A DNA stretch of 64,000 nt from Aplysia californica (GCF_000002075.1 NW_004798040.1:67541-131540); one strand, 5' to 3'; numbered from the stretch's first letter, positions 14,501-63,871 are shown. Program-made: numbers and translations. Notes: a model not told the origin generated them from the sequence alone.

Positions 14501-17500
14501 CTACTTGATGATGGTGGATATCCAGGGAAGCAGAGTGAGGCGTGAGGCCCGGTAGCAGCCGTAGGTCAGAAGGCCGATCGCCGTAAGACGGAAACCCCAT
14601 CTGGCAACTGAAGACGCCATCGACGCCGGGGGCAACCTGGCAATGATGAATGAGAAACAGGTGAGATAAAGCCAGGCGAAATTTCTTGCCTTTGTTATAT
14701 TTTTGTTATAGTTATAATAAATACTTTTACAGCACTTGCAACAAAATAAGGTCCTATAAGTGCCAAAGATTAGAGGTGTTACAAGACAGTAACAAACACA
14801 CAAAAAATAAGATAGACGTTTGATAAAAATAGAAGGAGCAAACCACACCGGAGCAGCTGCTAACTACCCACAATCTCTTGTCAGAGGTGCTGACAAAAAA
14901 CAAAATAAAACCACCAGAAATCTCTAGCCTCAGGTTTTTTGTTTTGTTTATTTGAGAAGAGAAAAGCACATCAACACAGTAACTGTCTTATGGTGCTGGA
15001 TAAAAGTATGAAGGACAAACAGAAACAACAGAAGGAGGTAAAGAAGTAGGACCTATAAGTGGGGCCCACCAATCACCTGCAGCCTCAGGTAATTTTTTTG
15101 TTTTGCGTTTCAGTAAAAAGAAAGATATGAACACAAAGATGGTCATTTAGTGCAGGAAGAGAGAAAGACAGACAGAAACAGTAGAGGGAAAGAAAAGAGG
15201 AAGGTCCTACCAAACACCTGCTCCTCATCTTATGTGACAGTAAAACACACAAAATATAGACACAGGAAATCTCTGTTTTTGTTCTAGTAGAGGTTTTACA
15301 GCGCTCGCAACTGCATAAGGTCATATGAGCGCCAGAAGATTAGAGGTGTTACAGGAGAGTAACAAACATAAAAAAAGAAGGAGGGGAGATAAGGACGATA
15401 GATGTTTGATGGGAAAGAATTTCAAAGAAGGAGCAAACCACACCAGAGCACCCACCAACCACCCATACAGGAAATCTCAGGTCTTGAGGTAACAAACACA
15501 AACATAAAGCCTGTAGACTGTATGTCACCGCAGGTCAGAGCAGCCTGCCTCTAAAATGACCTAACTTGTGTCGATGGGGCCACAAAACGTATTGCCAGCA
15601 AGCTGTTCAAATGTACAGCAACATTTTTTTTGGGGGGGAGAAAAACTGTTTTATTCTTTTAACAACTGTATCTTAACCCTTCCAGCCCCATGCATGTATA
15701 TTTTCAGCAGTGCTTGTACTTCCCACTATCCCAAGAGCGTATATTCTCAGTTTCAGGTGGTACCGAATTTGCACATTTTGTGAACCTGAATAAACTTAAA
15801 TGTTTGTTCATTTACCTTTAAACATTGTTATATAACATACTACATCAGTTTTTAGAATGCAAGCCTCTTTTCTAAAATACTGCTGTATAGGCAGGGACTG
15901 GGATTAGGGAGTGCACAAAAGTGGCTGGGGCAGGAAGGGTTAACTTGCTTTTTTCAACATTTAGACTTTGAATTTCGAGAAAACATATTTCTCTAGCACA
16001 TGCAACCAATACCCTACCTCAGATTAAGAAACTGAAATTAAAAAGATTTTGGGCAAAGTCAGTACATCTGAACAGCTGATCGACGCTACATGCAAAGCAC
16101 AGGGGTCACTCAAGACCCAACAAATGAGAGAACTGACCGGCAGATTTCCTCCACGTCCAGCTCCTTGTGCCAGTTCTCCGTGATGCCCTTCACATGACCA
16201 ATCCCCACCACGCCCACCACCACTGCTGGGACCTCGCCTGGAAAAACACAAGATGTTGTTGTTGTTGTTGTTTTCAAATCCCTTTAGCTGCGAGCATTTC
16301 GCTCTTGGCAGCGCAATGCCTCCCTCAAGTAACCACATGTCCTTGTCATCTGGTCAACGCCAGAGTAGAGCAAGCTTTGTAAGTCTGTAGGTGTGTGTAG
16401 GAGCTTGCATCGAAGAACATAACACAAGATACAACATGATAAGATAACATAACAATTTCTTGATCTCCACAAAAAGAACTTTGCTGCGACATGATCAATA
16501 CATACACACATGCACTTATCTGTTATCAACACACTCTCACACACACATACACACACACACACACACACACACACACACACACACAAACAAATACACACAT
16601 GCACTTATCTGTTATCAACACACTCTCTCACACACACACACACATATACACACACACACACACAAACATATACACACATGCACTTATCTGTTATCAGCAC
16701 ACTCTCTCACACACACAAACACATACACACACATGCACTTATCTGTTATCATCACACTCTCTCACACACACATACACACACACACACATGCACTTATCTG
16801 TTATCAACACACTCTTTCACACACACATACACATATATACACACACGCACTTATCTGTTATCAACACACTCTCTCACACACACAGACACATACACACACA
16901 CACTTATCTGTTATCAACACACTCTCTCACACACACAAACACATACACACATGCACTTATCTGTTATCAACACACTCTCTCACACACACAAACACATACA
17001 CACACATGCACTTATTTGTTATCAACACACTCTCTCACACACACACACACATGCACTTATCTGTTATCAACACACTCTCTCACACACACAAACACATACA
17101 CACACACACACAAAGAGTATCTGGACGGACATACAAAATAATGTTGTTCTCCCACACATCAATAGCTCATGTTGATGACAGTATGAAGTAATTTTTATAC
17201 CTGTTGGATCTTACTTAAACTTTTAACTGCTGGACCTACATAAGCTCACAAAGGACTCAAGCCTGGCAGTGGGGAGGCAAAAGGGGGAGAGGGATGTTTA
17301 GTACTGTTTTACGCCACTCGCAACTGCATAAGGTCATATGAGCAACAAGGGGTGGATGTCAACAGAGAAGTCTTTACAGGGAATCAGGCTTATTCTGCTC
17401 ACCTCTCTAACCTCAACAGCACAAAGTCTGCTTCGACTATCATCAAGGCATCCCGGAAATAGCAGTTCACCAGAGCGTGACAAACATGACAAACGAAGTA

Positions 17501-20500
17501 GGGGATAATTGACAATAATAAGGATGAGGAAAGAAAAAGCGGTGAAAGGGGTAGGGGAAGAAGGGATATAAGCGTGAAAGAGAGGAGAGGAGAGTGTTTA
17601 ACCTATTGAAGGAAAAGTTTCAGTGCTCTAGTTCTGTGACTGACCTCCTGGAGCCTCTGGGCAGGGCACAGGCTGCGTGGCTTTGCGGAGAGAATGTGCC
17701 AAGTAGACGTCTCGCTCGCTGACAAACACCTGGCCAAGGGCAGGGAACTCTCCGGTCATCTGCTCGATCGTCTGCTCCAGCATGTCCTTCTGTTTGCATT
17801 TCTCCACATCTTCTTTCCTGGCGGCGAAGAAAGGACGATGGAAAAATTTAGCATTTTTTAAGGGACAAGAATAAGTTAACATTTTTCAATATCTTCTGTC
17901 CTGAGGATAAATAAAGAACAAGAGAATGTTATCATTTCAGGCCTTATATCCCAGGACAATGCACGACTATCTGTATGTGAAACTGACGAATCAAAGGATA
18001 AAAAATACACAATGTGAAACCATTTAACAACAGCAACAATAACAACAACTACAACAACACACACAAACACACACACACATATATATAGGCACACACACAC
18101 ACACACACACACACAAACACACACAAATCCGAGACCTGGACAAATTCTCAACATACAAAATTACTGGCCGGGGATAATGTTGAACAAATGTGTCTTTCGC
18201 CTTTAGTTAAACTCTGTCTCTCATGTTACGATAAACGTTTCTCTTTGGAGGGAATCCCAGATCTTTTTTTGTTTTCAGCTCTCTTGAATGAACACTCTAC
18301 CTGTTGGTACAAACGTAGATCTATGGAAACGTTTCAGCATTGAAAAGGTTAAAGCAGTGTCAGTGTTGACTAAAGGACTGATTTTTCTCAAGAGACACCA
18401 TACAACTGCGAGAGGAGCAAACTCACGTGATGGGCTCTTTCGAGCAGAGGATAGCATATGCCAGTTTGAGTCTCTGCCAGAGGCTGAGGGAGGCCAGGGC
18501 TCGTCGCAGCGTGATCTGAATGGGCCGGTCGCCCAGGATAAACCGGCAGCCTCCACGCAGCTTTCTTGCCTGAGTGGGGAAAAGAGAGTTTAGTTTTAGT
18601 TAGAGTTTCACGCCACCTGTGAGACAAATAGGTCTATATTAGTGCCAAATTAGTCCTAGTAAGAGTTTTACGGCACTTGCAAAACAAAGAGGTCATATAA
18701 GTACCGAAGACTAGAGGTGTTACTAAAGAGTAACGTATAAAGAGAAGAAATAGAAATAAAGACAATAGAAGTCGGAAAGGAAAGAAAGAGCTAATCACAC
18801 CGCAGCGTCCACCAATCACCCACAGGAATAGAGAAGTGACTATTTATTTGTTCCAATATTTTTATTCAATGACTTTATCGAGACAGCTTTGTTATGTAAG
18901 TGCTACATCGTGATTTTGACTTCCTGCTTTAGACTTCCTGGGTAAAAACACTTAAATTCAAGAAAAAGCAAAGGTACCTCATTGAAGGCGGTGCGGAACT
19001 CCCCTCCGGGCGCCATTCCCAGCTCCTTGGTGATGTAGGCCGACATGTTGAGGAGGAGGATGTTGAGGACTCCTTGCATCACGCCATTCTGTAGGAAAGA
19101 TACAGAAGGTAGAGCTGGGCGAAGAATTGAATCCGGAACCGATTCCCACGATTAATGCTACGGAGGAAAAGTTCCGACTCCTTTTTACACAAACCAACGG
19201 TTACCAGCTACCTTAATTATTCAAATCTTTTCTCTTTTTTTTTCAAAATATATTTTTGAAAAATAAAAGTCGAGACTTCCTCGTGTTCCAAAATCGAGGT
19301 TATCCTAACTCCCGAAGATGTTCGGAGCCAACCAGGTAACAATCGGAAGAAATCACATCCTTGGAAAGTAAGTAATTGGGATTGGAGTCGATTCCTACGA
19401 TTCCTAGCTTTTATTTATAATCGGGAAACTAGCCGCCCAGCACTAACAGAAGGTCATTTTTACCATCATCTATCATAATGCTTCCATCTTAACCATCTCG
19501 TATAAGTATTCTTACGACCTTAGAGCATGCATCAGAATAACATTGAGAGTGTATCTAGCTTAAGATTATTATTGTTTATATTGCTGCTCATTTATATTAT
19601 GCATGTGATTGTAAGCCTGCATGTGTGTGCATGTGTGTGTGTGTGTGTGTGTGTGTGTGTGTGTGTGTGTGTGTGTGTGTGTGCGCGCGCGCGTGTGCAT
19701 GTACACGTGGTGAAACACCATACCAATGTGCCAGGATCTGGGCAATTAAGATATATCTTATCTTATCTTATCTATTGGGGGGAGGGGAAGGGGGGGGACA
19801 TGAAAACAACAGCTTGTCCTCAACAGCATGTATTTGTTTATTTTAATTATACTTTTCCTCAACTACACAAAATACAAACGACCATAAAAAAAATAAAAAG
19901 CACAGCCCCAACACTCCGAACTGCTTGACCTGAACCAGTGCGCAATATCTAGGGTCAAGTGGAGGTTCAGTTATGTCTTACTGGAATAGTAAATGGTAGG
20001 GGCTGTGATGTGTGTGTGAGTGAGTGTTAATGAGTGTGTATGTGCGGTGTGTGTGCGCGCGCGTGTGTTAGTGTGTGCCTGCGCGTGTGTTAGTGTGTGC
20101 CTACACGTGTGCATGTGTGTGTGTCTGTGTGTGTATGTGTGAACGTNNNNNNNNNNNNNNNNNNNNNNNNNNNNNNNNNNNNNNNNNNNNNNNNNNNNNN
20201 NNNNNNNNNNNNNNNNNNNNNNNNNNNNNNNNNNNNNNNNNNNNNNNNNNNNNNNNNNNNNNNNNNNNNNNNNNNNNNNNNNNNNNNNNNNNNNNNNNNN
20301 NNNNNCCCCCCCCCCCACAGGACCAGCACCTACCCTCTGGATGAGCTGCCTGATGGTGCTCATGTTGATGTTTTTCGCCTCCTCCAAGATCCGTGCCTCG
20401 TCCATCTTGAGGATGTTCACCCTGCTCTGGCACAGCTCCACCAGGATCACGTGCGGCTTGGCCATCTGTATCACCTTTACAACACACAGAAAAAATAGCT

Positions 20501-63640: not shown

Positions 63641-63691
63641 CTGGAAAGTCAAAGGTCATAAGGTCATTTTTTTTTTCTTTCTCTGAGAAAG

Positions 63692-63871
63692 AGTTTAGTT
63701 TTAGTAAGAGTTTTACGACACTTGCAACACAATATGGTCTTACAAGTGTCGAAGAATAGAGGTGTTACAAGAGAGCAACATACACTAAAAAGAACGAGGA
63801 GAGATAAGGATGATAGATGTTTGATAGGAAGGAAGGAGAAAACCACACCAGAGCACCCACCAACCACCCAC
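63692..63871 (-). mobile_element. Family A copy with TSD, about 50 nt upstream of BicD acceptor 63641
   Basis: Gene-strand TSD TAAACTCTTWCTCAG overlapping the element tail. Confidence 0.85.

Follow-up and report, generated by a model that had tools for sequence, protein, structure and literature searches.

The 3' tails of short retroposons are docked, in sense orientation, just upstream of 3' splice sites (acceptors) in a 64,000-nucleotide stretch of the genome of the sea hare Aplysia californica, hereafter the window (contig C770:67541-131540 of an assembly of 927 Mb in 4,332 contigs). A tail of retroposon family A, D or B ends 12-72 nt upstream of nine of the 16 acceptors that were verified or judged probable in the window. 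A preliminary description of the same DNA had claimed docking at about 12 of about 22 acceptors, a tally that is reduced here although the observation itself is confirmed in the main. Counts of a tail motif followed by an acceptor motif extended it to the whole genome, where the enrichment is about 5-fold and concerns a minority of copies. The docking is largely real, and its mechanism is unproven.

Families A, D and B are genuine interspersed repeats as revealed by BLAST within the window and at other loci. Family A, represented in the window by 18 copies or fragments, is about 180 bp long, starts with GTGGGTGGTTGG and ends with ...CTCTTACTAAAACTAAACT (in a longer form of the end, ...GCAAGTGCCGTAAAACTCTTACTAAAACTAAACT); 30 close copies elsewhere were 91-94% identical to the window reference copy. 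Family D, of about 175 bp, is present at 61020-61200 and 17297-17463 (- strand), and its homology to A is confined to the last 57 nt or so at the tail end; part of the A matches that cover the tail only are family D copies. Family B, of about 150 bp, starts with GTGGGTGATTGG, similar to the A start, both heads reading GTGGGTG(G/A)TTGG, and has a (CAAA)n-type tail. The tail of A and D is of the (ACTAAA)n type, and a hairpin (GGCACUU...AAGUGCU, fold z = -2.15), common to A and D, lies just 5' of the single-stranded tail. Among 35 fuller copies, 22 were flanked by target-site duplications (TSDs) of 7-15 bp and of varied, unrelated sequence (for example GTCAGAGA, AAAATGTTGGT and TTCCTCCCTCC), as were the window copies 15277, 32915 and 63692. 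Truncation at the 5' end was common, many copies beginning at query positions 17-140 yet reaching the tail, and older A or B tails often carried a newer copy inserted directly on them, giving tandem or nested copies. The varied TSDs, the 5' truncations, the tandem and nested copies and the 3' hairpin indicate that A, D and B are true retroposons integrated by target-primed reverse transcription, with the variable duplications, the intact 3' end and the dispersed high copy number of retroposons lacking long terminal repeats. About 27 copies were counted in 167 kb of arbitrary genome stretches, which extrapolates to roughly 150,000 genome-wide; the density was one per 3.4 kb in the gene-rich window versus one per 6.2 kb in the arbitrary stretches, and the tail 11-mer CTTACTAAAAC occurs exactly 24,647 times in the genome versus about 900 by chance.

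A polymerase III head derived from tRNA, 5S or 7SL RNA, the mark of a canonical short interspersed nuclear element (SINE), is absent from A, D and B. In Rfam searches no family reached the gathering score anywhere in the window and the reference copy gave no meaningful match up to E = 10; a retrozyme or classical SINE head was ruled out by these searches, which revealed neither a tRNA-like head nor a hammerhead ribozyme nor any further RNA family, whether in the window or in the reference copy. Family C, about 145 bp long and ending in (ATT)n, is distinct from these repeats; it is found at 37188-37330 (+), 51047-51180 and 57224-57295, with numerous copies in other loci at identities of up to 97%.

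In order to place the acceptors, exons were searched singly; most short exons were missed by Pfam, so that those of NAA10 were identified with solved protein chains and those of BicD with homologues found by tblastn. RNA reads and contigs over 14000-19999 placed TRABD introns at 14637-16137, 17817-18425 and 18569-18976. The joints 14634>16136 and 18568>18977 confirm acceptors 14637 and 18570, and the joint 17816>18426 confirms an additional, undocked acceptor at 17817. Spliced reads and contigs cross the docked TRABD acceptors, which are accordingly in use. The four NAA10 acceptors at 30772, 31489, 31989 and 32779 were confirmed by alignment of the exons with consecutive residues of solved NAA10 chains (residues 8-42, 41-61, 61-77 and 130-159), the intervening exon being placed by Pfam. 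The exon at BicD acceptor 63641 corresponds to Pfam profile positions 445-488 and that at 61003 to positions 592-717, with homologue alignments of the latter beginning at residue 22 of the open frame. Acceptor 61903 has weaker tblastn support, the homologues matching 61917-61774 with E = 1.7e-6. The acceptor of the leucine-rich repeat (LRR) gene at 42585 is probable, as judged from the 445-amino-acid LRR open frame that follows its CAG rather than from RNA. The undocked acceptors are 19089, 17817, 16238, about 30155, 31989 and about 62600.

Docking as first described at 14637, 18570, 30772, 31489, 32779, 63641, 61903 and 61003 is thus upheld with acceptors backed by RNA, NAA10 chains, Pfam or tblastn, and at 42585 with the tail 12 nt upstream of a probable acceptor. 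Two other cases did not survive. The supposed fragment of a long interspersed nuclear element (LINE) before 16238 proved to be no more than a 73-nt repeat, unclassified, together with an (AAC)n run, with no repeat homology that would make it a retroposon tail; the donor alone of this TRABD exon was confirmed by RNA, and a TraB-like VVGxGH motif was read in it with no Pfam match. The supposed family C tail before 31989 is just an (ATT)n-like microsatellite that is not homologous to family C. At 49871 the reported A-type fragment is present, decayed, upstream of a strong acceptor-like CAG, but the acceptor is unverified and no BicD homology or other verified exon was found downstream. The 73-nt segment at 16263-16335, just upstream of acceptor 16238, is also found inverted at 6568-6640, 9.7 kb away and with 97% identity. 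The copies concerned, with two further copies that are referred to below, are as follows.

14709-14871 (-): A with a decayed tail, about 68-72 nt from TRABD acceptor 14637 (RNA joint).
15277-15465 (-): A, mid-intron and undocked, 640 nt from the acceptor, with the 12-bp TSD GAGATTTCCTGT.
18583-18823 (-): full A (18823-18650) and a tail-only copy (18653-18583), 17 nt from TRABD acceptor 18569/18570 (BLAST, RNA joint).
30619-30745 (+): B, 27 nt from NAA10 acceptor 30772 (exon matching NAA10 residues 41-61).
31319-31439 (+): B, about 50 nt from NAA10 acceptor 31489 (exon matching residues 61-77).
32445-32719 (+): A with its last 49 nt in triplicate, 60 nt from NAA10 acceptor 32779 (exon matching residues 130-159).
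37447-37782 (+): the reference full A and a directly adjoining 5'-truncated A, an example of tail-directed reinsertion.
42344-42574 (+): a pair of consecutive A-type copies truncated at the 5' end, the tail of the second lying 12 nt from the probable LRR acceptor 42585.
49924-50046 (-): decayed A-type fragment, about 42-45 nt from the unverified CAG at 49871.
61020-61200 (-): D with an A-like tail, 22 nt from acceptor 61003 of the last large BicD exon.
61927-62186 (-): B with an A inserted at its tail, the A tail 24 nt from BicD acceptor 61903 (tblastn).
63692-63873 (-): full A, the TSD TAAACTCTT overlapping its tail, 50 nt from BicD acceptor 63641.

The tandem triplicate at 32573-32719 (+) is composed of 49-nt units, each comprising the hairpin 3' arm and the tail, that are 94-100% identical.

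The number of docked copies was compared with a chance model in which the strand was fixed and the 13 independent insertion clusters were placed uniformly in their own ancestral introns. Nine of the 13 clusters lie within 75 nt of an acceptor versus 1.96 expected (P = 6e-6). The length of the LRR intron was assumed, since the assembly gap at 41486-41985 hides its true length; for introns of known length only, seven of 11 clusters were docked versus 1.68 expected (P = 1.6e-4). The window enrichment factor of 4.6 is in line with the genome value. No element head lies less than 150 nt from a donor in the window, and among 52 full-length heads elsewhere none had a donor motif within 150 nt upstream, results indicating that the effect belongs to the 3' ends of introns and not to exon surroundings generally. 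It might be supposed that the pattern arose by chance or in the eye of the reader, dense elements lying in short introns and exons being noticed because of the elements beside them. With introns of 0.4-1.5 kb and a copy every 3.4 kb the uniform model indeed gives 15% docking per cluster, and two of the twelve cases first cited fail and one has an unverified acceptor. The short introns make the window look extreme, and its share of 9/16 does not extend genome-wide. The significance in the window, however, was obtained with acceptors set independently by RNA and protein homology.

For the main genome-wide series, the tail 11-mer followed by a strict acceptor motif (seven pyrimidines, N, CAGG) was counted over the whole genome at different gaps, the last sense bin having been added because that at 141-171 nt was contaminated by tandem copies.

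Sense motif, gap 10-40 nt: 99
Sense motif, gap 41-71 nt: 90
Sense motif, gap 141-171 nt: 62
Sense motif, gap 300-330 nt: 41
Antisense motif (control), gap 10-40 nt: 33

The near count exceeds both the far count (99 vs 41, P = 1e-6) and the antisense control (99 vs 33, P = 7e-9), so that the excess over uniform placement, on which the preliminary description had made its proposal depend, is seen genome-wide. Among 6,602 tails in a 16-mer series with a five-pyrimidine motif, 55 had the motif near, 29 had it at 105-135 nt and 23 had it in antisense, in agreement with the main series. With the chance level of 33-41 deducted, the density of genuine acceptors within about 70 nt of a tail is several times that at 300 nt. 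The docked share is about 4-7% of copies genome-wide, an estimate resting on a motif that recovers about 7-21% of verified acceptors, versus about 1% under the uniform model, and the enrichment before acceptors is put at about 5-fold, between limits of 2 and 8. Docked copies were also recognized individually in other loci (5-6 of about 85); the five family B copies outside the window were too few for statistics.

L022: tail 62 nt before a dystroglycan exon (Pfam E = 8e-10, passing the family cut-off), with a perfect 11-bp TSD.
L044: tail 33 nt before a kinase-domain exon (Pfam E = 6e-7, passing the family cut-off).
L010: tail 28 nt before a TRAF zinc-finger-like (zf-TRAF) exon (E = 0.0013, not reaching the family cut-off).
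L048: tail 11 nt before an APCDDC match (E = 0.0005, not reaching the family cut-off).
L003: tail 23 nt before a long open frame with no Pfam match.
L004: tail 56 nt before a long open frame with no Pfam match.

The genome-wide distance gradient and the tails preceding Pfam-confirmed exons at unrelated loci, together with the window test, refute chance at the stated significance, and it is scarcely credible as the explanation. Some docked tail-plus-acceptor stretches were identical letter for letter on different contigs (C290:908811 and C1156:160309, C4:1569905 and C547:158508, C540:105524 and C1402:53542); these could be uncollapsed haplotypes, segmental duplications, or cases in which the 3' flank was carried by the element.

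The copies of A, D and B in the window are grouped by strand into four blocks, in agreement with the five genes placed there. Adjacent copies 0.2-6 kb apart share the same strand in 48 cases versus 14 on opposite strands (P = 1.7e-5), and outside the window the corresponding numbers are 29 and 12.

The first of the explanations offered in the preliminary description was insertion guided by microhomology between the tail and branch-point-like DNA: a nicked target would pair with the ACTAAA tail, and branch sites, being tail-like, would receive insertions. Such microhomology exists. Most TSDs have their first base 1-5 nt within the tail or open with AAA(C/A), A makes up 39-41% of the first five flanking bases beyond the tail and T 37% of the five that follow, newer copies were reinserted at older A and B tails, and the overlap of the TSD with the tail reported at 63692 was found as TAAACTCTT. 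A position-weight target model built from 54 non-docked sites, however, predicts that the final 75 nt of the ancestral introns of the window should be enriched only 1.3-fold, not 5-fold, and favours the antisense strand (1.74 versus 1.07-1.38), whereas the observed copies are sense-only with an excess of about 5-fold. The distances to the AG are evenly distributed between 11 and 72 nt with no peak at branch-point distance (18-40 nt), the target TTCCTCCCTCC at the dystroglycan locus lies within a pyrimidine tract and is not a branch site, and short ACTAA-like words are much commoner than branch sites. Since the target model is too weak and points to the wrong strand, and since the distances are flat, tail microhomology contributes but cannot be the cause; as sole cause it is largely refuted and very unlikely.

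A second explanation is selection or fixation bias alone. Integration would be unbiased, sense copies elsewhere in introns would be mildly harmful as decoy branch points that activate cryptic acceptors, antisense copies would be harmful owing to the donor-like reverse complement of the tail (TTTTA|GTAAGAG), and copies adjacent to acceptors would be neutral or slightly helpful and would fix more often in a species with a large population. In agreement with this proposal, the tail resembles an optimal branch site and, at 42585, 18569, 61003 and 61903, where only 12-24 nt separate tail and acceptor, there is no space for another branch point, so that the branch point would have to be in the tail. 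In addition, splicing is normal at docked acceptors, the copies sampled as young are of no very recent origin, and the pattern is unexplained by the target-sequence model. Retention of the tail as a branch point, also put forward in the preliminary description, is plausible at these short distances. Against it, docking showed no trend with age: copies were docked equally often in the classes with at least 86% identity (8 of 49), 80-86% (2 of 28) and less than 80% (5 of 27), so that the difference between young and old copies that had been suggested as a discriminating feature did not appear. Docked tails were no better conserved than others (Mann-Whitney P = 0.44), small samples limiting both comparisons. 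The flat age distribution and the lack of extra conservation speak against slow preferential retention. The high density of copies in the gene-rich window ill suits a general cost of intronic copies, and docking reaches 50-72 nt, with an excess that persists at 141-171 nt, past the branch-point zone. Selection alone is the less likely account, though it deserves serious consideration.

We favour, at a rough probability of 0.42 and hence tentatively, a bias at the stage of integration tied to transcription or to the 3' splice-site region, followed by a selective filter that spares sense copies. According to this proposal, A, D and B would be promoter-less short retroposons dependent on a LINE-type reverse transcriptase. 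The excess would be created as copies integrate, or very shortly afterwards, by a coupling of integration to transcription or to the condition of the 3' splice-site region, where DNA might be open or a polymerase or spliceosome paused; weak microhomology of tail and target would add to it. Selection would then clear the zone between branch point and AG except for sense copies, the UACUAA-like tail of which could substitute for the displaced branch point. Targeting coupled to transcription or splicing, the remaining alternative of the preliminary description, would be consistent with the bias in strand, with the clustering of copies and with docking that shows no trend with age.

Several points weigh against this proposal. 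The landing sites of new insertions and the use of the tail as branch point are deduced indirectly, from sequence. The copies classed as young are still 6-9% diverged from the query copy, leaving room for selection at the fixation stage. The orientation claim is based on the five genes of the window and on strand clustering elsewhere, not on genome annotation. We know of no retroposon with transcription-strand-specific integration, and the mechanism is to that extent speculative. The genome counts, finally, rely on a crude motif with its 7-21% recovery of known acceptors; slightly pyrimidine-rich flanks may lift the chance level near tails up to about 1.4-fold, some hits are duplicated loci, and about eight of the 62 hits in the 141-171 nt bin are tandem copies with a docked second member, which together are the reasons why the enrichment is known just as 2 to 8.

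Poly(A) RNA is rich in element RNA. The undocked A copy at 15277-15465 (-) has loose ends at 15292/15293, where the element runs into at least 20 A's after ...CTCTTACT (poly-T when seen on the + strand); three poly(A) RNA-seq runs each gave 290-430 such reads per place. RNAs of the element type seem, therefore, either to receive poly(A) at the tail or to terminate in it. At 15465, the 5' end of this - strand copy, 400-630 reads per run extend past the head into partly shared sequence (+ strand CTTACTA...; in element sense ...TAGTAAG directly 5' of GTGGGTGG) with an agreement of only 0.4, and may represent a longer related family or one strongly expressed locus. At window position 15332 about 800 reads per run match the element over its final 55 nt or so only, beyond which they continue in a different body that they have in common, indicating that at least one further expressed family has the same 3' tail domain.

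A source of element RNA in splicing itself was also considered. Docked sense copies would be the source genes, with GTGGGT at the head serving as 5' splice site and the tail as branch point used with the host acceptor; the excised lariat would yield a promoter-less RNA whose 5' end is fixed, to be used as template in the making of new copies. That A, D and B have no known promoter or RNA family, that A and B share their GT-initial start, that the tail is branch-site-like and that element RNA is abundant are all consistent with this idea. Nevertheless, no read joining the tail A to the GT start was found among the listed joints, GTGGGT is a donor of only moderate strength, headless mollusc SINEs are known that have taken their 5' ends from a LINE instead (PMC4758252), and the idea addresses the source of the RNA rather than the docking of progeny copies. 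It is considered unlikely. Equally improbable is an extended form in which the elements would use the spliceosome at both ends of their cycle, the lariat being the source and transcribed 3' splice sites the destination. SF1 or the U2 snRNP on the tail, with U2AF on the nascent pyrimidine tract, would guide the reverse-transcriptase complex, and such spliceosome-guided integration would lead to both sense orientation and docking.

The genes of the window are given below. The first is a single-exon gene for the large subunit of an adaptor complex, with intron-rich neighbours.

1906-4791 (+): adaptin-like gene, an intronless open frame of 962 aa with an adaptin N-terminal domain (E = 3e-60).
About 14.2 kb to past 20 kb (-): TRABD, from RNA joints.
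About 30.1-33 kb (+): NAA10, from exon matches to solved NAA10 chains and Pfam.
42565-43899 (+): open frame of the LRR gene, 445 aa, with an LRR_8 domain.
60.5-64 kb (-): 3' part of BicD, from Pfam and tblastn.

Five assembly gaps lie within or adjoin micro- or minisatellites and affect no measured distance or called exon. The minisatellite at 45035-45655 (+) has 27-nt units and is open in all three + frames, one of which reads SDVPTSSPT. Further minisatellites are located at 40430-41334, 13678-14028, 9076-9425 and 16514-17156; unit types besides the 27-nt one are 54 nt (between two assembly gaps), 9 nt and 35 nt, and a CA-rich minisatellite with units of roughly 55 nt lies inside a TRABD intron.

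In the literature searched for an orientation bias of SINEs in the sense of genes or for docking at branch points nothing pertinent was found, nor any description of retroposons that are sense-only and acceptor-docked; the preliminary description likewise knew of no SINE or LINE system with this targeting. The nearest relatives in architecture are stringent-type SINEs. Kajikawa and Okada reportedly described in 2002 the eel pair UnaSINE1/UnaL2, in which a LINE-dependent SINE of this type shares with its LINE a structured 3' tail that ends in short tandem repeats. Like these, A, D and B are short and non-autonomous, with a 3' hairpin and simple-repeat tail, variable TSDs, 5' truncation and tail-target microhomology; they differ in having no tRNA, 5S or 7SL head or Rfam match, in their one-sided gene orientation and in the excess of about 5-fold before acceptors. 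The LP-SINEs of gastropods and bivalves have a LINE-derived 5' end and a body or tail shared with tRNA-derived SINEs (Matetovici et al. 2016, PMC4758252). They resemble the present families in being molluscan and headless with tails shared with other SINE families, and the words 'orientation' and 'intron' are absent from the text of that paper. Compared with targeted retroelements, there is the roughly 5-fold excess upstream of acceptors, but it concerns 4-7% of copies, with varied TSDs and no fixed distance.

Introners are transposons that create new spliceosomal introns. The families resemble them in being mobile and co-oriented with genes, with splice-signal-like ends (a GT start and a branch-site-like end), and differ in that docked copies have no acceptor of their own and fill only the 3' part of older, longer introns (0.4-1.5 kb) at conserved junctions such as those of NAA10, with donors at least 150 nt upstream. 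In mammals, SINE copies near exons are depleted; the poly-T of antisense Alu supplies pyrimidine tracts and gives new exons, and disease-causing SINE insertions near 3' splice sites break splicing. In both settings a SINE near an acceptor supplies or disturbs splicing signals, whereas the sea-hare copies are sense and enriched, the old exon stays in use and the tail is branch-site-like.

If integration is biased, this would be the first retroposon known to us whose choice of target reads the direction of transcription and the position of splice sites, and it would offer a natural means of studying the encounter of reverse transcription with transcription and splicing. Should selection be responsible, the branch points of thousands of sea-hare introns would have been replaced by a mobile element, a natural experiment in branch-point turnover on a large scale. 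To our knowledge, retroposons near splice sites are depleted or harmful in the known cases, whereas here a very abundant family with a near-optimal branch-site word is enriched before acceptors in sense orientation.

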